A stretch of DNA of 64,000 nt from Dendrobates tinctorius (GCF_039654945.1 NW_027361692.1:21018001-21082000), one strand, 5' to 3'; shown: positions 6,634 to 50,776, counted from the first letter of the stretch. Numbers and translations: made by a program. Notes: generated from the letters alone by a model not told the origin.

Positions 6634-9600
6634 CTATGTGTCATCAGGGGAAGGTGGGACAAAATCCTTGGAAACCCATGCGTGGTTCATTTTAATGAAG
6701 GTTAGATCATCCACATTTTGGGTTGACAGACGGGTCCTTTTTTCTGTCAGGATTGATCCAGCTGCACTGAAGACTCTTTCCGATAGCACACTTGCAGCTG
6801 GGCAAGCGAGCTCCTGTAAGGCATATTGGGCCAATTCAGGCCAGGTGTCCAGTTTAGCGGCCCAATAGTCAAAGGGGAATGACCTGTGTGGGAGAACATC
6901 GATATGGGAGGAAAAGTAGTTTGTAACCATAGTTGACAACTGCTGTCTCCTGTCACTTTCCATCGATGCAGTATTACCAGTTGTGTGAGCGGTATTTGAA
7001 AAATCAGTCCACAACATTGTCATGAAACCCCTGTCTCCAACGCCACTTCTGCTGTGTGCACCACGAACACCTCTGCCAAGCTGCCCCCGGCCCGTACGGC
7101 TCGTGTGAGAACCATCACCGCTGCTGTGTGCTGGGAATGCCTCAAGCAAGCGATTTACCAGAGTTGCTTGTTTATTAGCCAATATTAGGTCAAGGTTCTC
7201 CTGTGGCATGATGTTTTGTAATTTGCCTTTATAGCGTGGATCCAGGATGCTGGCCAACCAGTAGTCGTCATCGTTCATCATTTTGGCAATGCGGGGGTCC
7301 CTTTTTAGGATCCGCAAAGCATAATCTGACATGTGGGCCAATGTTCCCGGTGTCAATGATGCACTGCGAGTGCTGGGTGGAGGAACACTTTCTGGCAAAT
7401 CCACATCCCTCCAGTCACGCACAAACCCTGTACCAGACCTTGCCACGCCAACATTTTCACTTGCCCCACGAGATGCATCTTCCTCCCCTAAGTAATCATC
7501 CCCATCATCATCCTCCTCCTCCTCTTCTTCCTCCACCTCGTCCAGGAGAGGTCCCTGAGCAGACAATGGCTGAATGTCATCAAGGATTCCCTCCTCCTCT
7601 TCCTCCTCATCAACATTGGCTGCAGATGCCTGCTCCTTAAGGTGCATCAAAGTTTACATGAGCAGACGCATAAGTGGGATGCTCATGCTTAGAATGGCGT
7701 CGTCTGCGCTTACCAGCCGTGTGCATTCCTCAAAACACTGAAGGACTTTACAGAGGTCTTTCAGCTTCGACCACTGCACACCTGTCAACTCCATGTCTGC
7801 TCTCAAAGTGCCTGGCCGTGTATCCTCCCACAAATGCATTATGGCCTGCCTCTGCCCGCACAGCCGATCCACCATGTGCAGGGTGGAGTTCCACCTTGTT
7901 GCAATGTCGATAATGAGGCGGTGGTTGGGAAGGTGGAGCAATCGCTGCAGCTTCTGCATACGAACGGAGTGTACAGGCGACCGGCGGATGTGCGCGCACA
8001 GTCTTCGCACCTTCTGGAGCAGGGCTGTTAACTCCGGATAATTTTTGAGGAAGCACTGCACCACCAGGTTCAAGGTGTGAGCCAAGCAAGGTATGTGGCT
8101 GAGTTTTGAAAGGGCTATGGCTGCCACAAAATTACGGCCGTTATCACTAACTACCTTGCCTGCCTCAAGATGTACACTGCCCAGCCATGACTCAGTTTTT
8201 CGCTTCAAGTACTCGGCCAGCACCTCGGCGGTGTGTCTGTCGCCCAAACACATCATCTGCAACACAGCCTGCTGACGCTTTCCACTAGCTGCTCGATAGG
8301 GGGACACATCGTGTGCAACAGTGGCAGCTGCAGATGGAGTGCTCGTACGACTGCGCTCTGTGGACGAGCTTTCGCTTCTGGAGGAGGAGGAGGAGGAGGA
8401 GGAGGGTCGAACGCCTACAGCCAACTGTTTCCTATACCGTGGGCTAGGCAGCACTGTCCCACCACCGCTGTCCCCTGTGGACCCTGCATCCACCACATTA
8501 ACCCAGTGCGCAGTGATGGACACGTAACGGCCCTGACCATGCCGACTGGACCATGCATCAGTTGTGAGGTGCACCTTTCCGCTCACTGACTGCTTGATTG
8601 CATGGACAATGCGGTCTTTCACATGATGGTGGAGGGCTGGGATGGCTTTGCGAGAGAAGAAGTGGCGACTGGGTAGGTCATAGCGTGGTACTGCATAGGC
8701 CATGAGTTCGCGGAAAGCTGTGCTTTCCACCAACCGAAAGGGCATCATCTCAAACGAGATTAGTTTGGCAATGTGGGCGTTCAAACCCAGTGTACGCGGA
8801 TGAGAGACTGAGTACTTTCTTGACCTACTCATAGTTTCTGGGAGGGTGAGCTGGACTTGAGAGCTGCATATGGTGGAAGTAGCGGTGGACAGGGCGGACT
8901 GAGAGAGGGTTGATGATGGTGATGGAGTTGGTGTTCTTTCTGATGGCCTAGAATCAGTCTTTCGTTGATATAACAGTGGGATTCCCTGACTGCTGTGGCC
9001 TTGCAACGACACCTCAACATTTGCTGCTGTGCTAACCGGTGGGCTTACAGTGGGGGAAACAATGTAGCGTTGCTGACTACCTTCGTTGTGATCAGTTGCA
9101 CATGTGGCACTTGAGGTTTGGTGTTGTGTCCACGCTTGCAAGTGCATGCTGGTTAAATGTCTAAGCATGCAACTGGTATTCAAATTTTTCAGATTTTTCC
9201 CTCGGCTAAAGGTCTTTGCGCACTTCTTACAGATAACCTTGCCTGATCATGAGGATTTTGTTCAAAAAAGTGCCACACTGCACTCTTCCTACTTTGGAAG
9301 ACATTTTGCGGCCTAGCACGCTGTGCTATTTTGACCCTCTGGACAAGCTGTCCAGCAACTCTTTTGATGTTTGGAACCTGTCTTTGGAGTGCTCCGGGCC
9401 TGCCAGATAACAGCTGTTGCGATGTCGATGTCTGCTGTGGATGCTCCTCATCTGAGCTGTTGGAAGCAGCACCCTCTTCCCCCAATGGATGCCAATCTGG
9501 GTCAACAACTGGGTCATCCATCACCTCCTCTTCTATGTCATGTGCACCTTCCTCTGTGTCACCGTGTATGGTGGTATAGTGTGCGGGAAGGGGCACCTGA

Positions 9601-10178
9601 GTCTCATCAGGGTCAGAATCTGGCTCTGTACACTGCGAGGACAATGTAGTGCTCTGAGTGAATGTACCAGCAGAATCATCCATCAGCGGCTGTGCATCAG
9701 TACACTCCATGTCAGATTCATCTTGGCCTGGGTAATTCACCATTTCACTTGATAATCCAGGCATGGTATGTGAAAACAGCTCCATGGAGTAATCAGTAGT
9801 ATGGCCTGCGTCATCCTTCAATCTTGGTTGGGGTGAAGGACACAAGGAAAGGTGTGGTTCATGAACATGAGCCTCCAATGATGACTCAGTGCTTTTACTT
9901 TTTACAACTGAAGAAGAGGAGGCGATAGAGTTGGAGGCTGAATCAGCAATGTAATACAAAACTTTTTCCTGATGCTCTGGCTTTAAAAGCGGTTTGCCAA
10001 CTCCTAGAAAACTAAGCGTTCGAGGCCTTATGTAGCCAGACGATGACGCAGGGTCAGCACCTCCTGCATTCGGTCCTATTTTGCTCTTGCCACTACCATC
10101 AGATCCACCACCAACACCATCATTACCAGTTGCCAACCCCCGCCCAATTACACGGCCTCTTCCACCAGCCTTCCTCAT
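6634..10178 (-). pseudogene. hAT transposase (ZBED4/ZBED6-like: acidic N-terminus, BED finger, DDE core, hATC dimerisation domain), disrupted
   Basis: ATG at 10178 (MRKAGGRGR). BED motif KSAVWHFF...C..C...MLRHL is broken by a frameshift near 9240. Core motifs HLTTDAWS, VSDNG, CLAHTLNLVV, TRWNST. In-frame TAA at 7654-7656. C-terminal WPELAQYALQELACPAASVLSERVFSAAG. Confidence 0.93.
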
Positions 10179-10254
10179 TTTTGGTAGAAATGTAGACAAA
10201 ATCCAACAAACTATATAGTAATGTAAAACAAGGTACAAGGTGTCTATAGGACAG

Positions 10255-11040
10255 GGGAGATTTTGAATTTCTGCAGACACTTTTGGACACTGGACACTTT
10301 TGGATTGTGTGAGGCCCAATGAATATATGAGCGCTATGTGACAGGCTCGATGGCACAGCTGTGACCAAAGTGACTAGAGGATAAGGGAGATTTTGAATCT
10401 CTGCACACACTTTTGGACACTGGACACTTTTGGATTGTGTGAGGCCCAATGAATATATGAGCGCTATGTGACAGGCTCGATGGCACAGCTGTGACCAAAG
10501 TGACTAGAGGATAAGGGAGATTTTGAATCTCTGCACACACTTTTGGACACTGGACACTTTTGGATTATGTGAGGCCCACTGATATCTGAGCGCTATGTGA
10601 CAGGCTCGATGGCACAGCTGTGACCAAAGTAACTAGAGGATAAGGGAGATTTTGAATCTCTGCACACACTTTTGGACACTGGACACTTTTGGATTGTGTG
10701 AGGCCCAATGAATATCTGAGCGCTATGTGACAGGCTCGATGGCACAGCTGTGACCAAAGTGACTAGAGGATAAGGGAGATTTTGAATCTCTGCACACACT
10801 TTTGGACACTGGACACTTTTGGATTGTGTGAGGCCCACTGATATCTGAGCGCTAGGTCACAGGCTCGATGGCACAGCTGTGACAATAGTGACTAGAGGAT
10901 AAGGGAGATTTTGAATCTCTGCACACACTTTTAGACACTGGACACTTTTGGATTGTGTGAGGCCCAATGAATATCTGAGCGCTATGTGACAGGCTCAATG
11001 GCACAGCTGTGACAATAGTGACTAGAGGATAAGGGAGATT
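10255..11040. repeat. ~130-bp tandem array (~6 copies) upstream of the hAT transposase
   Basis: Unit GGGAGATTTTGAATCTCTGCACACAC...GACTAGAGGATAA recurs at ~130-bp spacing. Confidence 0.95.
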
Positions 11041-11450
11041 GGATTGCTTTTAAAAAAGCAGTTTGCGGAGCAGTGGGTAAACAGCAATGCCAGCCTGTCA
11101 GGAAGCCTTAAAAGGCAGCCCAACAACCAACACCACTGATACACCACAATATAGCCTCCCCTTGCACTGCACACACAGTGACTGGTGTGTTGTGCAGGCC
11201 AAATTGCTAGCAGCAGAAGCAGTTTTTTTTTCTTCTCAGCAGGACAAAAAAAAAAATTTGGATTGCTTTTAAAAAAGCAGTTTGCGGAGCAGTGGGTAAA
11301 CAGCAATGCAGGAATGTCAGGAAGCCTTAGAAGGCAGCCCAACAACCAACACCACTGATACACCACTATATAGCCTCCCCTTGCACTGCACACACAGTGA
11401 CTGGTGTGTTGTGCAGGCCAAATCGCTAGCAGCAGAAGCAGTTTTTTTGT
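11040..11450. repeat. ~190-bp direct duplication in the hAT 5' region
   Basis: GGATTGCTTTTAAAAAAGCAG...GCAGAAGCAGTTTTT occurs twice, ~219 bp apart. Confidence 0.9.
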
Positions 11451-11520
11451 CTTCTTCCCTGCCTAACGCTCTCCCTACAGAATCAGCAGCAACCTCTCCC
11501 TATACTGAGATCGGCAGAAG

Positions 11521-11668
11521 TAAGATGGCGGTCGGCGTGCACGCCCTTTTATACCCCCTGTGACGCCCACCAAAGCAAGCCAATCACTTGCATGCCCTTC
11601 TGAAAGATGGTGGTGACCCCTGCCTATGTCATCACGTTGCCCACAGTGTCCGTGGATCCTGATTGGCT
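11521..11668 (-). promoter_or_regulatory. Candidate Pol II promoter of the hAT transposase
   Basis: Minus-strand TATAAAA (11547-11553), a YY1/Inr-like CCGCCATCTT ~16-25 nt downstream, and two inverted CCAAT boxes upstream (~11580 and ~11662). Confidence 0.5.
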
Positions 11669-11836
11669 GAAAAAGAGCGCAAAACAAACTTTTGAAACGC
11701 GACTTTGGCGCGTAAGTCGCCGACCTCGTGGTCGACCTCATCCTAGGGTCGGGTTTCGTTTCATGAAACCCGACTTTGCCAAAAGTCGGCGACTTTTGAA
11801 ATTTTTCGACCCGTTTCGCTCAACTCTAGTCATAAG

Positions 11837-12127
11837 TAGTGATGAGCGAGTATACTCGTTGCTCGGGTGTCTTCTGAGAATTTTGACGTGCTCAGAGATT
11901 TAATTTTTGTCAACGCAGCTGCATGATTTGAGGCTGCTAGATAGCCTAAATACATGTGGGAATTGTCTGTTTGTTAGGGATTTCCCACATGTATTCAGGC
12001 TGTCTAGCAGCTGCAAATCATGCAGCTGTGTCTACAAAAACTAAATCTCACAGCACGCCAAAATACTCGGAGGACACCTGAGCATGCTCTGGAAAACCGA
12101 AGCAATGAGTATACTCACTTATCACTA
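11837..12127. mobile_element. hAT MITE (~290 bp, palindromic)
   Basis: TIR TAGTGATGAGCGAG / CTCACTTATCACTA; 8-bp TSD GTCATAAG at 11829-11836 and 12128-12135. Confidence 0.9.
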
Positions 12128-12135
12128 GTCATAAG

Positions 12136-13050
12136 TATTCAGACCCTTTGCTCAGTATTGAGTAGAAGCACCCATTTGAGCTAGTACAGCCATGATTCTT
12201 CTTGAGAATGATGCAACAAGTTTTTCACACCTGAATTTGGGGATCCTCTGCCATTTTTCCTTGCAGATCGTCTCTAGTTCCATCAGGTTGGATGGTGAAC
12301 ATTGGTGGATAGCCATTTTCAGGTCTCTCCAGAGATGATCAATTGGGTTTTGGTCAGAGCTCTGGCTGGGCCAGTCAAGAATGGTCACAGAGTTGTTCTG
12401 AATCCACTCCTTTGTTATTTTAGCTGTGTGCTTGGGGTCATTGGCTTTTTGGAAGGTGAACCTTGGGCCAAGTCTGAGGTCCAGAGCACTCTGGAATAGG
12501 TTTTCATCCAGGATATCTCTGTACTTGGCTGCATTCATGTTTCCTTCAATTGCAACCAGTCGTCCATAAAAAACCTCCATAGCATGATGCTGCTACCACC
12601 ATGTTTCACTGTTGAGTTTCTATTGGGCAGATTATGAGCAGTGCCTGGTTTTCTCCACACATACTGCTTAGAATTATCACCAAAATGTTCTATCTTTATC
12701 TCATCAGACAAGAGAATCTTATTTCTCATAGTCTGGGAGACCTTCATGTGTATTTTAGCAAACTCTGCGGGCATTCATAGGCTTTCATATGTCTTGCACT
12801 GAGGAGAGGCTTCCATCAGGCCACTCTGCCATAAAAGCCCTACTGGTGGAGGGATGCACTGATAGTTGACTTTGTCGTACTTTCTACCATCTCCCTACTG
12901 TATCTGTGGAGCTCAGCCACAGTGATCTTGAGGTTCTTCTTTACCTCTCTCACCAAAGCTCTTCTCCCACAATTGCTCAGTTAGGCTGGACGGCCAGGTC
13001 TAGGAAGACTTCTGGTGGTCCGAAATTTCTTTCATTTTAGAATTATGGAG
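12136..13050 (-). mobile_element. Tc1/mariner remnant with partial transposase
   Basis: ORFs 12535-12774 and 12152-12580 contain ILLSDE, VKHGG, NDPKH and WPSQS..QNPI; both ends truncated. Confidence 0.9.
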
Positions 13051-13365
13051 TTCATTCACAGATCAGCCGGGGACTCCCCGCAGCCTCAGTGTTGTCAGCA
13101 GGAGTCCCCGGCTGATCTGTGAATGAACTAATGACCATGGGAACAAAGTCAGAAACTTTCCCACGGTAATTAGTTCATCTACAGGCAGCCATTGAGGCTG
13201 TGCAGAGCTGAATCAATTCATTTTGTAGTAGATTACAGTGAGGCTGGTCGCATTAGCACCGGTACTCATTGTAAACTACTTAACCCCTTCTGATGGATTG
13301 CAGCGTGGGACATGACTGAATGGCGGAGAGATAAGGATATTGGTGATTTTTTATGTTATTTTTGT

Positions 13366-13935
13366 ACGCGTATTGCCGCTGCGACTAGCGGCTTCGTCGC
13401 AGCGGCAATACGCGTGGGGCCTGCCTACCACCCCGTTTCTTTAGCCCCTTTGGGACTCTTGCTGCTCTAACCTGTATCTGGTGGTTCTAATTTGCTCATT
13501 ATGCATCCACTGCAACGTTTCAATTTCAGCCATGGTATAACCATTCTTGGGCGTCTTTTGCACTAGGCAATTTCATTCTGTGGTTAGTTCCTCATGCTTT
13601 CGGGCAGTTAGGATTTACATTTTTTCTTACATTGATTTATTATATGCTTGATATCAAGTCTATTTTTCTGCCTTATCTTTGCCTGCAATGTACATGGCTG
13701 TCTTGTTATATATAATTGCATGATATGTGCCTGCTTATGGGTGGCTATGAATAGTCCAATATGGGCCTCATCTTAGGTTCATATTACCTGTTTTTTGGGG
13801 GTGTCTGGGTTATTGGCTCTTTGTTTGTATTTTAAATGTTTTTAGCTTATTGTATCCAATATGAAATAAAGGTTTTTTATTGTCTATTGGGATGTGCATA
13901 CCATCATTAGCCTAGTCTTTTTCTTCCTTTTTTAT
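13366..13935 (+). mobile_element. Penelope pLTR/retrozyme-like remnant with a short 5' inversion
   Basis: 50-bp hairpin (13366-13415) built from a decayed hammerhead (GACGA-AGCCGCT..AGCGGC-AATA-CGCGTGGGG), followed by an AT-rich tract with AATAAA. Confidence 0.45.
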
Positions 13936-38483: not shown

Positions 38484-40049
38484 TATGGGCTATCAGCGCA
38501 CTCAGGACAAATTGCACAACAACTTTTAGGTCCAATTTCTCCTGTTTCCCTTGGGAAAATGAAAAAAATTGGATCTGAATTATTTTTTAGTGAAAAAAGT
38601 TAAATGTTCATTTTTTTAAACATTTCAAAAATTCCTGGGAAGCATCTGAAGGGTTAATAAACTTCTTGAATGTGGTTTTGAGCAATTTAAGGGGTGCAGT
38701 TTTTGAATGGGTATTTTCTATCATATAGACCCCCCAAAGTGACTTCAAATGTGATGTGGTCCCAAAAAAAGGTGTTGAAAAACTGAGAAATCGCTGTTTA
38801 ACTTTTAACCCTTATAACTTCCTAACAAAAAAAAAATTTTGGTCCCAAAATTGTGCTGATATAAAGTAAACTTTAGGAAATGTTAATTATTAAGTATTTT
38901 TTGTGGCATATCATTGTGATTTAAGGGCATGAAAATTCAATGTTGGAAAATTGCGAAATTTTCAAAATTTTCACCACGTTTCTGTTTTTTCACAAATAAA
39001 CACAAGTCATATCAAAGAGATTTTACCACTAACATGAAGTGCAATATGTCTTAAGAAAACAGTGCCAGAATCACCAGGATCCATGTAAGCGTTCCAGAGT
39101 TATTACCTCATAAAGGGACAGTGGTCAGAAATGTAAAAATTGGCCAGGTCATTAACATGCAAACCACCCTTGGGGGTAGAAGGGTTAAACTGTAACATGT
39201 AAAGTGCTGCGGAATATGTCAGCACTATAGAAATAAAATGTATTAATATTATTAAACTGAGCTTAGGAGAAGTTCTTTCTTTTGATGCTGGAAGTCACAG
39301 AAATGACACCACCTTTCTATCAATAATATAAAATATTAATGACACTTTTGCCTGCAATTTCATTTTAAATTTCTAAATTAAAAGATTAAATTATCTTAGC
39401 TGCATAACTTATCATAATGTAGGAGAATAGTTTTTATTTACATAAGATAACACAAGTCTTATACTTTGTAGTCATATTGTATAATAGAAGTTATTCCCTT
39501 CACTCTAAAGTTTTTGCCTTTTTTATTTTAATACATACATTTTCTGTTTTAGGACAAAGGATCAACAGTGGCATCAAGTGGCCATAACAGTTAATCAACG
39601 AATGTCCTAGAGATATCCTTCGGGATATATTCCAGCATTAATTGCATTCCAAGACAATGACCTGAATGTATTTCAGTGCATGGTCATATAGCTGGTTGTT
39701 TAATGGTGTAATAATGTACTTTATATATAACCTTTAGTCATTTCAAAGGTATATTACTTTACTGTTTCTTAATTATTGAATTTTCATTAAAGAGCTTATA
39801 AGTGTCTGAGTTTTCAGAACATCTGTTATGTTTTTAATGGTGGGGTGGATCCGAATTTGCTATGAACAAGGAAATGCATGTAAGTTCAATTCAAAGCTTC
39901 ACAAAACTGGCAAAATAACTATTTATTTAAACAATAGAGTAATATTTAACACTAGATGGTGGCCCGATTCTAACGCATCGGGTATTCTAGAATATGTATG
40001 TAGTTTATTTATGAAGATTTAATAATAATGCAATAATGCACCCCCCTAT

Positions 40050-40661
40050 CCTGATATGCATGGTCCTCTCACCCCCAATCCTGATATGCTTGGTCCTCTC
40101 ACCCCCCATTCCTGATATGCATGGTACCCCTCACCCCCCTATCCTGGTATGCATGGTTTCCTCACCCCCCAATTCTGATATGTATGGTCCCTCTCGCCCT
40201 CCAATCCTGGAATGCATGGTCCTCTCACCCCCAATCCTGGAATGCATGGTCCTCTCACCCCCAATCCTGGTATGCATGGTCCTCTCACCCTTCTTTCCTG
40301 GTAAGCATGGTCGCCTCACCCCCCTATCCTGGTATGCATGGTCCCCTGACCCCCCAATCCTGATATGTATGGTCCCCCTCACCCTCCAATCCTGATATGC
40401 AAGGTCCCCTCACCCTCCAATCCTGGAATGCATGGTCCTCTCACCCCCCAATCCTGGTATGCATGGTCCTCTCACCCCTCTTTCCTGGTAAGCATGGTCC
40501 CCTCACCCCCCTTTCCTAGTATGCATGGTCCCCCTCACCCCCTTTTCTGGTACGCATGGTCCCGTCACCCCCTTTTCCTGGTATGCATGGTCCCATCACC
40601 CCCCTTTGCTGGTATGTATGGTCACCCTCACCTACTATTCCTGGTATGCATGGTCACCCTC
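40050..40661. repeat. ~30-bp minisatellite CCTGGTATGCATGGTCCCCTCACCCC (resumes at 49838-50075)
   Basis: Tandem units are directly visible. Confidence 0.9.
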
Positions 40662-41778
40662 GGTTTTAGGAAGTTTCGCCCCCAGCAGTTCATCCCCAGC
40701 AATTTGCCCCCAGCAGTTCACCCCCAGGTACATTTCACCCCCGCACATTTCGCCCCTATCATTTCACTCCCAGGAGGATTCGCCCCCAGCAGTTCGCCCC
40801 CAGCAGTTCACCCCTGGCAGTTCACCCCCGATTTTTTCGCCCCCAGCAGTTCGCCCCTGGATGTTTCGCCCCCAGTAGTTCGCCCCCGGATGTTTCACCC
40901 CCAGCAGTTCACCCCCGGATCGTTCGCCCCCTGATGTTTCTGCCCTAGCAGTTCACCCCCGGATGTTTCGTCCCTAGATTTTTTGCCCCTGGATGTTTCG
41001 CCCCCAGCAGTTCGCCCCCGGATGTTTCGCCCCCAGCAGTTCGCCCCTGGACTTTTCGCCCCCAGATTTTTCACCCCCGGCAGTTCACCCCCGGATGTTT
41101 CACCCCAGCAGTTCATCCCCTGATGTTTCGCCCCCGGATTTTTCTCCCCCGGAAGTTCGCCCCCGGATGTTTCGCCCCCAGCAGCTCACCCCCGGTAGTT
41201 TTCCCCGGAAGTGTGTACCCTGTTTTGCCCCCAGAATTTTGTGTTTGGATGTTTCGCCAGTTTGTCCTTGTGGTTCATGAATTCCCTTGCGTCATCAATT
41301 CATGCCACAAAAGTACTGTACAGAGTGCTGCACTTTTGTGACATTTTAAATCAGCTGTTTCTGTCTGTAAACCTCACAACTGATTGAATTATAGTGTCAG
41401 AGCATTTTGCCTGCAATTTTAACAAGACATTTTCCAAAACGTTTCTAAAACATTTTTGTGTTACAGAAACATACCAAGAAAAAAATAAACGGATTCAAAA
41501 AATGCAGTGTGAATGAGACCTGATTTAGGTGGGGAATGTAAACCACTCTAAACTCAAAACATTTTGTGAACTTTTACCTGATCCATCACTGACCTGCTTT
41601 TTTGCAAGTTTTGTTGCAGATGTAACAATTTTCATGTCAGGTGTACTGCAAGTTACATTAGACTAGCTTTTATTCCATCTTTACATCAGAATATAGCAGT
41701 GTCTAAAATCTCTACAAAGAGAGAGGTGTACTAGCACAAAAAATCAGTCAGCTTCCACAGCAATTCACTTTCTACAAG

Positions 41779-42222
41779 TATGAATTTGTTTTATCCAAAC
41801 GTGGGGAGAAGAAGTGGGTCCACGAGAATCACATTTACGTATTTTCCAAACGAACGGCTGACGATGTCTATTCCATCTGGGTGTGTGAAAAACAGTTGAC
41901 TTCCAAGTAACCAATCCCCACAACCACGCAGCACAAGCAGCAAGACCTGTAGCAATCTGACTTGTCAATGAGGCGCTCACCAGGGCAAGGACAACACAGG
42001 AGACACCACCACAGATTCTGACAGAAGTCATTTCAGGAGCCCATTCTAATGTTGTAGGACTTCTCCCAAAGAAAGCATCACTGAAGAGAACAATACGATT
42101 ATCAAGGCAACTTGGCAATATTCCAAGGTTGCCCCAAACCCTTGATCAACTTGTTATTCCCCAGGAGTTCCAGGGGATCAATATTGATGGTATCCAGCAG
42201 CAGTTCCTTCTGCATGACTCTG
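41779..42222 (+). pseudogene. FLYWCH-domain MULE (Phantom) transposase exon, disrupted
   Basis: Hand translation: YEFVLSKRGEKKWVHENHIYVFSKRTADDVYSIWVCEK (frameshift) VTNPHNHAAQAARPVAI*LVNEALTRARTTQETPPQILTEVISGAHSNVVGLLPKKASLKRTIRLSRQLGNIPRLPQTLDQLVIPQEFQGINIDGIQQQFLLHDS, ending at a G|GTAAG donor. Confidence 0.85.
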
Positions 42223-43569
42223 GTAAGCATTTAACATTTCCATTATATAGAATTATTGCAAAGTTTATATTGCGCAAATGTGAAAAATTATCTATTACAA
42301 AGTGCTGATATAGAATACTATGTGATTATTTTACCTTAAAGGGAAACTTTGTGGATAGTGTAATGTAGGATGAGGCCTACTGATTCCAACTATGCCTCAC
42401 TTGTTTAGTTGCAGTCTGATTCTGCCTTTGAGATACAGTGGCCTGCCATGTTCATAAGCACAGTGGCAACCTTGTCCACCAACCATGATTTGCAGGTATC
42501 CAGCCATTGTCAATCACAACCAGAGGACAAGGTTGTCGCATCAAAATCGTATCACTAGATGTCAATTTTAGTGTAGAATTTTCTGCTATAAATTAGTTGC
42601 AGATTGTCTGCTGCAACTACTTAGTGCATGTGAATGGACCTTAAGGATTCATTAACATGTCTCCTAACCTCTGCCCTGCCCCTTTAGCCATGCCCCCTGC
42701 TAACAGCCTGAAATGAAGTTCCAATGCTGAATTAGTGCTGGGAAGAGGGTACACCATGCCCCAGTAGGTGCCGGTCACTTACCGGAGCAAGGCAGGGGGT
42801 TAATTAATATTCACCACCTGCTTCCATACGCTGCTTTGATACAGGACCTGGAATGATGTATGCAATCATGTGATCGCACACGTCTCAGGATTTGCATTGA
42901 AGCAGAGTGAGGAAAGCAGCGCAGCAGCAGGCGGTGAGTATTAATTTATCCTTGCCATGCTCCAGGAGGAGACAGGCACCTATTAGAGCATGATAGATCC
43001 AGGGGGCCCGCTGTTCATGGTCGCATTACACCCCTTGGCGGCAGGCCCCTGATGGCCCGGGGGCAGTGGTGTCCCCTGCCTACATGGTAGGTACGCCACT
43101 GCTGCACTGCATGTCATTTTTTTAACTGTGCATTTTTTCATGAGCATGTGGATGGAATTTAGACATTTACGCTGCATATGACCCCGACCTAATGAACTGT
43201 TGAGTTAGTATGCTTTTTTTCACAAATAATTCTTACATGTTTGCTTGTTTTTCCTGATGTAAACCTTTTATTATCATGGAATTCTGCATTTTGCTAGTTT
43301 CTGCTGCCGTTATTCCTTTCACGACTTTGAAAATGTGACATTTTTGAAGCTTGAAACATTTTTAAACAGAAATATATCATTTTCCACTGGAACAATACAT
43401 GTCGTAGAAAAAACTATTGTTTAGTTCCTTCACACCTGATTTTGCTTCAATTTAACTTTTCTGCTATAAAATCAGAAAATCTGAAGAAAAATGTGAGTTT
43501 TTGATGTGAGATATGAACAACGGATGCTTCTGATTAGGAAAATTTATTGTGAATTCATCCCAAAATTCT

Positions 43570-43842
43570 CTGTCGCGCATCTGCCCTTTTTGAGCTGCAC
43601 CGAGTGCACATAATGCAACACAATGCATTTGGCGCACGTCGGCGCAGCACAAAAAGGGCGGATGTGCGGGCAAAAGTGTACCAGCGCACAACCAGCGTAC
43701 CCAATGCTAAGTATAGGGTATGCTGATTGCATGCAGCATCATGCGATCAGAGGAGGAGCTGACCGGAGGAGGCACGGCTGGGGCCAGAGCTTAGCGGCAG
43801 CCCTGCGCTGCACCCAGTAACGCTAGTGTGAAACTAGCCTAA
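43570..43842. mobile_element. Half copy of a Harbinger MITE related to 19451-19908
   Basis: Ends GTGTGAAACTAGCC|TAA; shares the ATGCTAA.ATAGGGT motif. Confidence 0.65.
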
Positions 43843-43992
43843 GTGTCCAAGAAAAAATATGCAACTCCAGGTAGAGAAAAGTTAATCCATGGGGCAGAAA
43901 TGACCAGAGTGCATATTAGAGATTTGAAAGCTAAGGTATAAGGAAGATATAAAAGAAATAGTGTTGCTACATTACCATAAGTAGTGACGGTA

Positions 43993-44148
43993 CCCCATCG
44001 CGCGTTTCGCATTTGCTTTTTCAAGGGGAGTGTATTTTTTAATATAATCAGGTAAAATTACATTTGGGTATCTTTTATACAGGGTGCCGATACCTCCTGG
44101 ACTAGCGCATCCGCCCCGACGTGCGTTTCGGTTCCTTTCTTAAGGGGC
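43993..44148 (-). ncRNA. Two tandem minimal hammerhead-like motifs (Penelope pLTR/retrozyme remnant)
   Basis: CCCC-TTGAAAA-AGCAAATGC-GAAA-CGCGCGAT-GGGG (43993-44028) and GCCCC-TTAAGAA-AGGAACC-GAAA-CGCACGTC-GGGGC (44113-44148); both have decayed cores. Confidence 0.6.
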
Positions 44149-44833
44149 CTGCTACCAACCAGGTGTCTCCATTATTTATATCTCCCAGCCGCAGCGTGGT
44201 ATACCGCGCGACCAGAAGTGACGCTCACCACCTGGATGTGACACGTCACATCCGGGTGGTGAGCATTACTTCCAGTCACGCAGACCAGAAGTGACCACGG
44301 TTATCTGATTATATTTGCGGAGTATTATTGTAATTATGGGTATGAGGGTTATTGCTAGGCAAGCGGCATTAATTTATGGTTGACATCTAGATCATAATCT
44401 GTGATGTGGCCTATACAGCTTGCCATTTAATTATGGCTATATTAATATTTGTAGTAGTTTATTATTAGGGCTTTCTCAGTTCTGCCCCTTGTAGCTGCAA
44501 TATATTGCTGGCAGTCCCTATGTCTATCCGTTTTTGTCTTAGCTGTCTCTTCCTGGATTTGCGCGTTTAATGAGTGACTGTGAGCAATGAGTGTATTATA
44601 TTTTTATACACACAAATAATTGCCTTGTCTTCATCCTTTTTCCTATGGTTCTGTGAGGTACCGACAGATGCGGAGGGTCCTCTTCAATCCTCTTCCATGC
44701 ACTTCCACATTGTGTGAATGTCATCGTTCCCGAGGGAATCACGTTCATTATTCCTAGCTAGGGATTCCCTTGATCAAGAAGATTCTCCACACAGGTAAGG
44801 ACCTCAGCAAAGGGGAGAGAAGCGATTTTTATT

Positions 44834-44946
44834 TTCTGATGAGCAAACTCCAAACATTGCCTGTTTTGGGTCGGCGTGGTTGAACCCGAGCAGGCAATGT
44901 TCGATACGAAACCTAAACTTTCCAGATCGGGTTTGCTCATCACTAG
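44834..44946. mobile_element. Tiny hAT MITE
   Basis: TGATGAGCAAA...TTTGCTCATCACTA, same TIR family as the other hAT MITEs. Confidence 0.6.
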
Positions 44947-45319
44947 ATATAGTATGATATGTAATGGATGACAAAAAGAAGCCATTAAGTGTAACACCAC
45001 TAGTACATGACAGTAAAATGATGGTCACTTGTCTTAGATCAGGGGTGTCAAACTCATATTCACCAAGGGCCACACCAAGTTAATGGATGTCCCTAAAGGG
45101 CCGTTTGTTACTAAAAGACCGGATGCACACAATCGAGTCCCGTCCAGAACATGCATTTCTCTGCACAGAGCAGTGCATGCCCCTGTATAAGGCATGTCAC
45201 GGTGGATCAGCTCTTTACCAAGCGCTGTCACATCTTCCCTGGATCTCACTGAAATCATGGAGAGCTATGGCTGCAGCTTCCAGTCACTTGTCCTTGTCGT
45301 TGGTGCTGAAAGCTGCTGA

Positions 45320-48071
45320 TAAACTGAAGCTGAAAGCTGCAGATGCACTCCGTATGCATCTATTCCCCCTCCAACCTCCAACTGGCTGTCATCTACCGCC
45401 CCCCGGAACTAGCCATCTCCACCTTTCTCGACCACTTCACCACCTGGCAACTCCATTTGCTTTCTGCTGACATCCCCATCATCATCATGGTCGACTTCAA
45501 CATCCCCATTGACACTTCCACCCCAGCTGCCTCTAAACTTCTATCGCTCACGGCTTCCCTTGGCCTCACTCAATGGTCCTCTGCGGCCACTCACAAAGAT
45601 GGTCACATGCTGGAGCTTATCTTCACCCGTCTTTGTTCCCTCACTAATCTCAATAACTCACCCCTCCCCCTGTCTGACCACAAACTACTGTCATTCTCTT
45701 CCCTCTCCTCTCCTACTGCGCATCCCCCGCTCCATAAACTCGCTCACCCTCGCAGGAATCTCAAACACCTCAATTTGCAATCACTCTCGGAGTCCCTTCT
45801 CCCTCTTACAGACATAGCTTCCCTTCATGACACAGATGCTGCTGCCACTTTTTATAACACCACAATAACAGCAACACTTGATTCAGCTGCCCCCCTCATG
45901 CAGAGCAAACTCGTACAATCAACAGGCAGCCCTGGCTGACCAGCCTGACCAAAGAACTGAGACAGTTTTCCAGGGCCGCTGAGTGGAGATGGAAGAGAAC
46001 CCATTCTACTGAGCACTTCAGCGCATACAAGCAGTCCCTTGCCAGCTTTAAGTCCATGCTCTCTGCTGCTAAACAAGCTTACTTCGCATCTCTCATATCC
46101 TCCCTGTCTCACAACCCTAAACAACTCTTCAACACTTTCAATTCTCTACTCTGTCCCACAGCACCTCATCCCCCTCCTCTCATTTCTGCTGAAGACTTTG
46201 CCTCCTTCTATAAGCAGAAGATCAACAAGATCAGACAAAACTTTGGCCCGCAGCCCCCAATGCCCCTCTTAGCCACTCAGCCCTGTTCTGCAAAAGCCAG
46301 CTTCTCCACTGTGACAGAAGATCAGCTCTCCACCCTTCTGTCCAGATCACACCTCACCACTTGTGCCCTCGACCCACTCCCATCTCACCTCATCCCTAAC
46401 ATGGCCACAATCTTCATCCCATCTCTATCACACCTCTTCAACCTTTCACTTACAAATGGTGGCTTTCCCTCATCCTTCAAACATGCCTCAATCACACCCA
46501 CCCTCAAAAAGCCCTCCCTTGATCCATCCTCTGTGTCTAACTATCGCCCGATATCTCTTCTCCCTTACGCCTCAAAACTACTGTACCAGCATGTATATCT
46601 TGAACTGTCCTCCCACCTCTCCTCCTGTTCCCTCTTTGACTGGTTACAATGTGGCTTCCGACCGCATCACTCAACTGAAACTGCCCTAACTAAAGTCACT
46701 AACGACTTACTAACCGCCAAGAGCAAGCGACACTACTCTGTCCTCCTTCTCCTGGACCTGTCCTCTGCCTTCGACACCATAGACCATTCCCTCCTGCTAC
46801 AGACTCTCTCATCTCTTGGCATCACAGACTTGGCCCTATCCTTGATCTCATCATACCTAACATTTAGTGTCTCCCTCTCACACACTACCTCCTCACCTCG
46901 CCCCCTGTCTGTTGGTGTTCCTCAAGGCTATGTCCTAGGACCCCTACTATTCTCCATCTACACCTTTGGCTAGGGACAGCTCATAGAATCCTACAGTTTG
47001 CAGTATCACCTCTATGCCGATGACACGCAGGTCTACCTATCTGGACCCAACCTCGCCTCCTTACTGACTGAAATCCCACAATGCCTGTCTGCTATCTCAA
47101 CCTTCTTCTCTGCTCGCTTTCTCAAACTGAACAAGAACAAAACAGAGTTCATCATCTTTCCCCCATCTCACTCTACCCCTCTACCAGACCTATCCATCAA
47201 TGTCAATGGCTGCTTTCTTTCCCCAGTCCCGCACGCTTGGTGCCTTGGGGTGATCCTCGACTCTGCGCTCTCTTTCAAACCACATATCCAAGCACTCGCC
47301 TCCTCTTGCTGCCTCAAACTCAAAAATATTTCCCGGATCAGCTCATTCCTCAACCACGAAACCACAAAAACACTATCATCTCCCGCCTCGACTACTGCAA
47401 CCGCCTACTCTCTGGCCTCCCCTCTAGCACTCTGGCTCCGCTCCAGTCCATCCTACACTCTGCTGTCTGACTAATCCACCTGTCTCCCCGCTATTCCCCA
47501 GCCTCGCCCCTATGCTACGCCCTTCACTTGTTTCCTATTGCCCAGAGGCTCCAATTCAAAACACTAACCATGACATACAAAGCAATCCACAACCTGTCCC
47601 CTCCATACATCTGTGACATGGTCTCTAGGTACCTACCCGCACACAACCTTCGATCATCTCAAGATCTCCTCTACTCCCCCCTTATCTCTTCTTTCCACAA
47701 TCACATACAAGACTTCTCCCGTGCTTCCCCCATACTCTGGGACTCTCTGCCGCAACACATCACACTCTCACCATCAACGGAAACCTTCAAGAAGAACCTG
47801 AAGACCCACCTGTTCTGACAAACCTACAGCCTGCAATGATCCTCGGTCTACTGAACCACTGCATGACCTGCTCTACCCTCTCCTACTGTATCCTCACCCA
47901 TCCCTGTAGACTGTGAGCCCTCACGGGCAGGGTCCCCTCTCCTTATGTACTTGTGTGTCCCTTGTCTTACACATGTTTATTATACTTGTCTATATTTCCC
48001 CTTTTCACATGTAAAGCGCCATGGAATAAATGACGCTATATAAATGCATAATAATAATAATAATAATAATA
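45320..48071 (+). mobile_element. L2 LINE, 5'-truncated (partial APE plus RT), degenerate
   Basis: AVIYRPP, DFNI, THKDGH.LEL, SDH; [46 protein letters not shown]; L2-type 3' end TGTAAAGCGCC...(TAA)n. Confidence 0.93.
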
Positions 48072-48391
48072 AACAGCTGGTTCAATGCAGAATACAACTG
48101 AACCCTATTCTTGGCCTAATCTGAGGAATGGGCATCAACAGAAAAAGGGATCCTGAAGTGAGAATACCACTTTTATCTGCTGCTCCATTCTCTGGTGTAC
48201 TGGCAGAGTGTTCTGTGAGGGCTAATCCCAAAACCCCCTTTCTGAAGACCTGATAAAGTGGTTCTGTAGAAGCTGGTTAACCACCACTTTAGTTCAGCAA
48301 AGCCAATATCTCAGTTCTGCAGAGATGGTTGGTGGGATTAACCCTGTAGTCAGTCAATAGTCCCCCTGCTTCAATACATTGCCTGCATTAA

Positions 48392-48915
48392 AGGGGTATT
48401 CTCATGCTGAACAGCAAAATAAGGCAGCATGCTTTCAGCAATTATGTTGTGGTAAGCAGGCTGCCGATCTTCCCCTCCTGGAACTTACCTAGAGGTCTTC
48501 TGCTCATCTTTGCCTGATCTTCTCCTGACCATGTGGGCTGGCGATCGCCATGCTGGATCCATAAGCCACCACGAGTTCTCTCCTTCCCAGCGTCCTCTTC
48601 TTCTGCTTGATCTCATCGCGGCACTGCACATGCGCAGCAGTGTTTTGGTGACAGGAGAGGCATCCTGCCCCCTGGATTGACTGATGAATGGGGCAGGAGT
48701 GATGTCATGTCAGTGAGGGGCCAGGAGACATTTGGCCTCACTGCCACAGCATTCTTCATGCTTCATGGATCAGTGATCCAGGCAAGATGAAAAGACAGCC
48801 AGAAGCAGGAGAAGACGTCACGGGGAACCGCTAGACTGCACTCCGGGACCCAAGAGCTGCAGCTGCGACAGGTAAGTATGTCAGTTTTTTTGTGTTCTAG
48901 GGTGGTAATATTCCT
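48392..48915. mobile_element. Kolobok/T2-type MITE
   Basis: TTAA|AGGGGTATT ... AATATTCCT|TTAA. Confidence 0.6.
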
Positions 48916-50776
48916 TTAAGGCCAGCCAATAGAGCTGCTGAAAAGGCAGCCTCAAGAATCCCCAGCAATTGGGGTCCTCTATATTTTACCCCAGGTATGT
49001 TCAGCCCTAGATGTTTTGTTCCCTGTATGTTGACCCCAAAAGCTGAGGGTGAAACATCTGGGGTCAAAATGCTAGGGGCAAAACATCAGATGGTGAAACT
49101 TCCAGGGACAAAATGCTGTAGGTGAAAGATCCGGGGGCAAACTGCTGGGGGTGAAAAATCCAGGCGCAAAATATCCTGGGGCGAAACATCGGGGAGCGAA
49201 CTGCTGGTGGCGAAACATCTGGGGGCGAACTGCCAGGGGCGAAAAATCCAGGGGTGAAACATCTAGTGTCGAACTGCTGGGGTGAAACATCCGGGGGCAA
49301 ACTGCCGGGGGCGAAAAATCCGGGGGCGAACTGCTGGGGCGAAACATCCGGGGGCGAACTGCTGGGGGCGAAACATCCGGGGTGAAATGCTAGGGGCAAA
49401 ACATCCGGGGGCGAACTGCTGGGGGCGAAACATCCGGGGGCGAAAAATCCGGGGGCGAAATGCTGGGGGCAAAACATCTGGGGGCGAAAAATCCGGGGGC
49501 GAAATGCTAGGGGCAAAACATCTGGGGGCGAACTGCTGGGGGCGAAAAATCCGGGGGCAAAATGCTGGGGGCAAAACATCTGGGGGCGAACTGCTGGGAG
49601 CGAAACATCCGGGGGCGAACTGCTGGGGGCGAAACATCCGGGGGCGAAAAATCCGGGGGCGAAATGCTGTGGGCAAAACATCCGGGGGCGAACCGCTGGG
49701 GGCAAAATGTGTGGGGGTGAAATGTGCAGGGACGAAACCTCCTGGGGGCCAAATGTTGGGGATGAAATGTGCGGGGGCAAAATGCACCTGGGGCAAACTG
49801 CTGGGGCGAACTGCTGGGGGCGAAACATCCAAATCCCAGTCACCTTCACCCCCTTTCCTTTTATGCATGGTCCCCCTCACCCCACTTTCCTGGTATGCAT
49901 GGTCCCTTCACCCCCCTATCCTGGTATGCATGTTTACCCTCACCCCCTTTCCTGTTATGCATGGTTCCAGTCACCCCCCTTTCCTGTTATGCATGGTTCC
50001 TGTCACCCCCATTTCCTGTTATGCATGGTCCCGGCACCCCCCTTTCCTGGTATGCATGGTCCCCATCACCCCTAGGAAACTGCACACATACAAAAAAAGA
50101 AAACCCATCTTTCTTGTGGTCCAGCACTGTCCCGTTCTGCCGGAGGCTGGGGGAGCCAGGAGGAGTACACGCATGCCCATACCGCGCTGTCCACCGCCAT
50201 TTTCCTGAAGACACACTGCAAATGTGTTTTCACGAAAATGGCGTTGGATAGCGGTATGTGCGTGCAATTCTCACGCGCACTCCTGCCCCGGCATCTTCCA
50301 GTCCCAGTAAAGCTTAGCGTGAAGGACGAAGATGACATCACTCTCGCAAGAGCATGACATCATCAGCGGTTTTGGCGCAAAGCATTACTGGGACCAAGAT
50401 GCAGGACGCGTGGTTAGAAAAGGGAAGTCCGGGGGCCGTCCAAAGGTGAGTATCTCACTATTTTTTATTTTAATTCTATTTTTTACAGATTAATGGTACC
50501 CAGGGCCTGGAGGAGTCTCCTCTCCTCTGGACCCTGGCTATCATCCGCACATTAGGCCGTGACCAATCAGTGGCGCGGGAGGCTGGAGTGCGCCTGTTGC
50601 TGATTGGTCGCGGCCTAGCGGCCACAACCAATCAGCAAGGCGGGATTTCCATTACAGACAAACAGACAGACAGAATTAGACAATTATATAGTAGATTTAT
50701 ACTGATTATATCAAATCTATAATAAAATGAATAATTTTCTTGTAAATATCTCCCACTATACAATGCCTTTTATCTA

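Follow-up and report, generated by a model that had tools for sequence, protein, structure and literature searches.

Within a 64-kb stretch of Dendrobates tinctorius DNA (GCF_039654945.1 NW_027361692.1:21018001-21082000; hereafter the window, with positions counted from its first base), the interval 40662-49837 is a single DNA transposon, whose ends are set by two inverted arrays of short tandem units with the core TTCGCCCC. We are highly confident in reading it as one old, dead and non-autonomous copy of a cut-and-paste element of the Mutator superfamily, belonging to the type in which a FLYWCH zinc finger is combined with the transposase domain of Mutator-like elements (MULEs), and to a family with a probable insect-to-frog origin. 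The locus itself is an ordinary dead copy, and its value lies in the family that it reveals.

According to Dupeyron et al. (2019, PMC6446971), no MULE transposase could be confirmed in vertebrates. Together with its intact relatives, the locus makes up a structurally complete case for one frog lineage, comprising arms, target-site duplication, FLYWCH domain, DDE core and intron, and it ties that lineage to firefly elements, in vertebrates, where true Mutator elements were doubted. If this holds true, the Mutator superfamily can be added to the few transposons known to have passed between insects and tetrapods. The family also supplies a natural vertebrate MULE transposase as a candidate for transposition assays.

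Composite arms and a duplicated target site

The two arrays constitute the terminal inverted repeats of the element, a left arm of ~595 bp and a right arm of ~850 bp, each consisting of a short tip, a GGA trinucleotide and a long run of tandem units (Table 1). Exact copies of TTCGCCCC number 17 in 40662-41260, every one in forward orientation, and the complement occurs 24 times in 48985-49837, every one in reverse; the other ~62 kb of the window hold 1+1 exact copies. When up to one mismatch is allowed, 32 units are counted in the left arm and 45 in the right, at a spacing of 14-15 bp. Complementarity between the arms ranges by segment from 70 to 87%, so that long terminal inverted repeats of the Mutator type are present. 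At the inner end of the right arm (48975-49040), ~65 nt of degenerate units run in the opposite orientation and form a small local foldback.

The element is bracketed by a 9-bp duplication, with eight of the nine bases identical between the two sides, and the phase of the surrounding minisatellite across the insertion likewise leaves 9 (at most 10) surplus bases as the duplicated ones. The insertion target is a C-rich host minisatellite of 31/32 bp with a unit of approximately CACCCCCCTTTCCTGGTATGCATGGTCCCCT. Since the 31-bp minisatellite runs in one orientation on both flanks, the element landed within that array. A first-pass annotation made from the sequence alone had described these features as inverted terminal repeats of ~600 and ~800 bp, built from 13-15-bp subrepeats and accompanied by a ~10-bp target-site duplication; the lengths, the strict strand polarity, the 14/15-bp period of the units and the duplication reported here bear out that description.

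The same architecture recurs in a firefly. In Photinus pyralis, locus L001 carries a 4.0-kb element (9342-13377) whose ~180-bp arms share the core of the frog arms, with 11 and 8 units at a spacing of 14-15 bp, and which is flanked by a perfect 9-bp duplication, CTTTTGGAT. Its tips, GGGATCC-GGA and GGTTTAC-GGA, compare with GGTTTTA-GGA and GGGATTT-GGA in the frog. With the transposase genes read in one direction, the tip types GGTTT.. and GGGAT.. have traded places between the firefly element and that of the window. The annotation had made its proposal depend on the arms being paired in other copies, and the firefly element is such a copy, with the same core and period. A target-site duplication of ~9 (8-11) bp is expected of the Mutator superfamily, and the 9-bp duplications of both the window element (GTCACCCTC/GTCACCTTC) and the firefly element fall within this range.

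An alternative reading of the arms is that they arose by inverted duplication of the host minisatellite, with the FLYWCH-like stretch between them being an unrelated, trapped pseudogene fragment. This candidate was considered and rejected: the core unit is nearly confined to the arms and has strict strand polarity there, the tips, the GGA and the 9-bp duplication lie exactly at the array ends, and the firefly element combines matching arms with a matching gene. These features already contradict it, and we regard it as very improbable.

A broken first exon, intact frog relatives and a shared intron

The transposase gene of the window copy survives as a first coding exon that corresponds to residues 1-163 of the 465/466-residue poison-frog proteins. 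We searched this exon as three separate pieces by blastp against three of these proteins (P0068, P0069 and P0071), and identity by piece ranged from 78 to 89%. An HNH motif lies at ~41919-41927, and a segment reading LKRTIR...FLLHDSG reaches 42227, immediately followed by GTAAGC. The first-pass annotation had described an exon of the form FLYWCH...HNH...LP...LKRTIR...FLLHDS ending in a GT donor, and such an exon is indeed present. Its proposed check against the FLYWCH profile returned a Pfam match to the N-terminal half of the domain at 41788-41907 (E 1.4e-4), the score of which, 22.4 bits, lies slightly under the cut-off of 23.6 because 13-14 residues of the finger are deleted. An N-terminal FLYWCH finger, as expected of a Phantom element in the broad sense, is further indicated by 80-89% identity to proteins that score 33-39 bits.

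Three lesions, which the annotation had not noticed, disrupt the exon: the loss of 1 nt in codon 3, which shifts the frame; a frameshifting deletion of ~43 nt, which removes residues 44-56/57 of the zinc finger (the flanking matches overlap at 41907/41904); and a TGA at 41958-41960, in place of residue 75. Furthermore, tblastn searches with seven relatives, at E values up to 50, recovered exon 1 only and gave no match to the MULE exon (residues 164-466) anywhere in the window, as the annotation, which had likewise failed to find the MULE catalytic exons, had reported. The MULE DDE domain (PF10551) is thus absent from the window copy, whereas full-length family members possess it. With a broken exon 1 and no exon 2, the window copy encodes no transposase; it is dead and non-autonomous.

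Relatives of the exon were identified with an exhaustive phmmer search using the 89-residue piece encoded at 41961-42227, which returned 63 proteins headed by a protein of the firefly P. pyralis (72% identity) and included an Anomaloglossus baeobatrachus protein with 94% identity over 33 residues. Word searches that used the firefly protein and a D. tinctorius protein as queries added further relatives. Full-length proteins with both FLYWCH and MULE domains are found in D. tinctorius (466 residues), Ranitomeya variabilis (465 residues) and R. imitator (430-466 residues). The three proteins used above exceed the Pfam cut-offs, with 33-39 bits for FLYWCH and 42-49 bits for MULE (cut-off 27.6), and D190, D252, E383 and C273-x2-H276 are conserved in full-length family members. 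The cluster of P0068 (D. tinctorius) at a minimum of 90% identity comprises 17 members from three species, and the length of several is 461-466 residues. With spans of 5.7-8.7 kb for products of 430-466 residues, the frog gene models contain introns.

The intron that separates exon 1 from the catalytic exon can be placed precisely in the firefly element, where ~880 bp lie between a donor at 10566/10567 and an acceptor at ~11446/11447. This intron and the GT donor of the window copy interrupt the identical Gly codon after the residues DS, in phase 1. A third relative, L003, has its intron at another position, and the intron position is therefore a feature shared by the firefly-frog group. On the frog side, use of the exon-2 acceptor is seen in L002, a Logan contig of SRR27929957 that falls in the frog clade, where the exon is joined to a KRAB-like upstream exon. 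The spliced transposase gene proposed by the annotation is supported, as the donor lies at the conserved phase-1 intron of the family, with the caveat that the window copy has no exon 2 and that its exon 1 is broken.

Three sequences from frogs or from the frog clade carry MULE sequence in unusual contexts. In L002:1-80, a phase-1 junction links MULE exon 2 to an upstream stretch, KDLYKDVIMENYQPLISQ, similar to a KRAB A-box, and the contig looks like a chimeric spliced transcript; the 3' flank of its exon 2 has no match in the window. P0216 of D. tinctorius, named 'voltage-dependent calcium channel gamma-2 subunit isoform X1', clusters at 90% identity with the MULE exon-2 protein P0075, which suggests either an exonised transposon exon or an annotation chimera. 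P0009 of A. baeobatrachus is a 668-residue model with ~150 residues of MULE followed by ~500 unrelated, partly coiled-coil residues, and is probably chimeric.

Host FLYWCH-domain genes exist in vertebrates, and on this ground the exon might be taken for a domesticated, FLYWCH1-like host gene. Such a gene would be expected to present an intact single-copy frame free of transposon ends, which is not what the locus contains: exon 1 is interrupted by two frameshifts and a stop, a MULE transposase domain is present in every close relative, and the exon sits between transposon arms with a target duplication. We consider this explanation extremely improbable.

Under the transposon reading, the DDE transposase of intact elements would excise the element and re-insert it, generating 9-bp duplications, by analogy with Mutator biology as described for Muta1 (PMC5499845). 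The spliced 465-466-residue transposase would bind the repeated units through its FLYWCH finger, pair both arms, cut, and re-insert the element elsewhere. The units keep a strict polarity and period, and on this basis the arms probably provide multiple candidate binding sites for the finger. The window copy would be mobile at most in trans, as the transposase of an intact copy would have to recognise its arms.

A decayed retrotransposon of the non-long-terminal-repeat class (a long interspersed nuclear element, LINE) is nested in the element, with Pfam matches to RVT_1 (6.8e-22 and 4.9e-6) and Exo_endo_phos_2 (0.011) and a strong C-rich skew. Its coding sequence is spread over three shifting frames, and its tail reads ...GTAAAGCGCCATGGAATAAATGACGCTATATAAATGCATAA(TAA)n. 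Self-comparison of the window revealed no second copy of either the element or the nested LINE. The interval 42234-45000 gave no tblastn (E up to 50), Pfam, Rfam or tRNA match and no further window copy, and Rfam and tRNA scans across the whole element were empty; neither this interval nor 48073-48984 has recognisable coding, RNA or repeat content. At 48480-48880, a GC-rich segment ends in GACAG-GTAAGT, resembling a plus-strand first exon with a splice donor.

Table 1. Annotated features of the transposon, its target site and its internal DNA, in window coordinates
Feature	Position	Strand	Details
Host 31-bp minisatellite, left part of target	40039..40661	.	TRF period 31, 20 copies
Left target-site duplication, GTCACCCTC	40653..40661	.	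8/9 bases identical to 49839-49847
Left composite terminal inverted repeat	40662..41260	+	Tip GGTTTTA, GGA, then ~32 tandem 14/15-bp TTCGCCCC units
Broken first coding exon, residues 1-163 (FLYWCH zinc finger and linker)	41780..42227	+	Six-frame translation, blastp, tblastn, Pfam
Exon piece, residues 4-43	41788-41907		80-83% identity (P0068/P0069/P0071)
Exon piece, residues 57-74	41904-41957		78-89% identity (P0068/P0069/P0071)
Exon piece, residues 76-163	41961-42227		86-89% identity (P0068/P0069/P0071)
Splice donor GTAAGC, phase-1 intron conserved in family	42228..42233	+	Splits Gly codon after DS, as in firefly L001
Internal DNA, putative intron remnant and/or other insertions	42234..45000	+	Without coding similarity to transposase
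Decayed non-LTR retrotransposon, nested	45084..48072 (5' limit approximate, ~45.0 kb)	+	Endonuclease and reverse transcriptase, (ATA)8 tail
Internal DNA between LINE and right arm	48073..48984	.	No match to the firefly element or to the 3' flank of L002 exon 2
Right composite terminal inverted repeat	48985..49837	-	Reverse-strand reading: tip GGGATTT, GGA, then ~45 units
Right target-site duplication, GTCACCTTC	49839..49847	.	Pairs with GTCACCCTC
Host minisatellite, right part of target	49849..50072	.	TRF period 32, 7 copies; orientation as left part

Phylogeny and probable insect origin

In a careful maximum-likelihood tree, with which a quick tree agrees, the frog sequences form one clade (support 100/100) that is sister to a single Photinus subfamily comprising P0001, P0066 and P0067 (100/99). 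The frogs and this subfamily lie within a 22-row clade (100/100) to which all nine firefly sequences belong, and aphid, tick, mite, copepod and springtail sequences fall outside it. Identity between frog and firefly proteins is 65-78%, compared with at most 46% to sequences outside the 22-row clade; aphid proteins are relatives at 35-42%. Within the frogs, the window exon groups with P0069 of R. variabilis (96/82), and, judged from this placement, the two represent a second frog subfamily, distinct from that of D. tinctorius and R. imitator. The named vertebrate matches in protein-database searches come from Dendrobates, Ranitomeya and Anomaloglossus only, all of them dendrobatoid frogs.

The tree is incongruent with host phylogeny, with frogs nested among firefly sequences, and the distribution in the recipient group is patchy, being limited among vertebrates to the Dendrobatoidea (a provisional statement, as it refers to protein databases). 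On the strength of these two observations, the most likely history is that poison frogs acquired the family horizontally from an insect lineage, and the saturation of synonymous sites between frogs and fireflies indicates that the transfer would be ancient. The host minisatellite on either flank, the frog LINE nested inside and the location of the frog genes on chromosome-scale contigs rule out contamination.

The same data bear on the possibility that an ancient vertebrate Mutator lineage was inherited vertically and lost except in poison frogs, its similarity to fireflies reflecting slow evolution. The saturated synonymous sites would suit such an old split, and unannotated vertebrate genomes are incompletely sampled. 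Slow evolution, however, sits poorly with a topology in which frogs pair with a single Photinus subfamily and not with the other Photinus or the Aquatica subfamilies, with aphids, ticks, mites, copepods and springtails further out, and with the gap in identity between fireflies and all sequences outside the clade. Protein searches returned no other vertebrate match, and frog and firefly have a derived intron position in common. We therefore judge vertical inheritance to be improbable.

Transfer in the other direction, from frogs to insects, or acquisition by both from a third, unsampled source, for example a parasite or a virus, finds some room in that the tree is rooted by outgroup choice only, that unnamed SRA contigs lie within the clade, that genes of the Phantom type are reported from insect viruses and that relatives occur in the nematode genus Romanomermis. 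Against this, the nine firefly sequences span the whole 22-row clade and the frogs are a single nested tip clade, which is the pattern of a recipient, and we regard these scenarios as possible but unlikely. The nematode sequences, P0003 and P0226 of Romanomermis culicivorax, a mermithid parasite of mosquito larvae, are fragments 49-55% identical to the exon-1 region, and a host of this sort could serve as an intermediary.

Transfer from insects to frogs accordingly remains our preferred explanation. Several considerations weigh against our reading of the element and its family. Third-position identity between frog and firefly is 45-47% and dS (NG86) is 2.4 or not computable, which makes a dS comparison with host genes inapplicable. 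The absence from other vertebrates was judged on predicted proteins rather than genome-wide DNA searches, and the firefly-frog clade includes several SRA contigs without a named host. The arms are known from the window copy and from the firefly L001 element. Finally, binding of the FLYWCH finger to the arm units is our inference alone. On balance, and with some reserve, we favour the view that a transfer from a firefly-related insect founded a Mutator lineage in the Dendrobatoidea with open, catalytically complete, intron-containing genes of 466 residues, which are near-identical across Dendrobates and Ranitomeya and possibly still mobile.

Classification and comparison with known systems

The combined evidence supports assignment of the element to the Mutator superfamily, as a FLYWCH+MULE element with foldback-like arms, of the Phantom/Tm1 type in the broad sense. 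The Phantom-type identity put forward by the first-pass annotation stands in this broad sense, given that the relatives of the exon are FLYWCH+MULE transposases and that the arms are foldback-like, as in Tm1. We do not assign the element to the narrow Phantom clade. For Phantom (group 20), the sources recorded by Dupeyron et al. (2019, PMC6446971) are limited to invertebrates, one tunicate and one ichnovirus, and firefly MULEs of 466-472 residues have been placed in the neighbouring clade 'MuDR1xSM' rather than in '20_Phantom' (PMC13359780). The latter source, a 2026 survey of arthropods, lists firefly MULEs under the names MULE-1_PhPy and MULE-1/2_AqLe. The literature searched yielded no description of poison-frog MULEs or of MULE transfer between insects and frogs, and Mutator elements go unmentioned in the Oophaga pumilio genome paper.

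Among described elements with such arms is Tm1 of root-knot nematodes, which Gross & Williamson (2011, PMC3169594) assigned to the Phantom subclass of Mutator. As described there, Tm1 has asymmetric 7-bp tips, GGA, a variable number of 13-15-bp repeats and unequal arms, and the window element reproduces this composite structure, with 32 units behind GGTTTTA-GGA and 45 behind GGGATTT-GGA. Tm1 also resembles the frog family in its 9-bp duplication and in a transposase of ~470-500 residues with an N-terminal FLYWCH domain and a MULE domain. The two differ in the repeated unit, which has the core TTCGCCCC in the frog and CGATTCAGTATCCGC in Tm1, and the frog family further departs from Tm1 in having a vertebrate host, an intron-split gene and no histone-hairpin variant. 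Members of the Phantom subclass, including Muta1 of Aedes aegypti, likewise combine FLYWCH and MULE domains with 8-10-bp duplications and, in some, long or foldback-like arms (Dupeyron et al. 2019). By the description of its arms, Foldback (FB) of Drosophila is comparable as well, with long, unequal inverted arms of short tandem subrepeats; unlike those of FB, the frog arms are linked to a FLYWCH+MULE gene and to a 9-bp duplication.

The firefly MULEs (P. pyralis PPYR_00736, PPYR_02059 and PPYR_05412, locus L001) are like the frog family in protein sequence, at the identities given above, and L001 agrees with it in arm unit, period, similar tips, the 9-bp duplication and the position and phase of the intron. 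It is unlike the frog family in size: L001 measures ~4.0 kb with arms of ~180 bp, against arms 3-5 times longer in the frog and frog genes that extend over 5.7-8.7 kb. Taken as a whole, the family is a vertebrate addition to the known FLYWCH+MULE type, of probable insect origin, and its link to fireflies is new.

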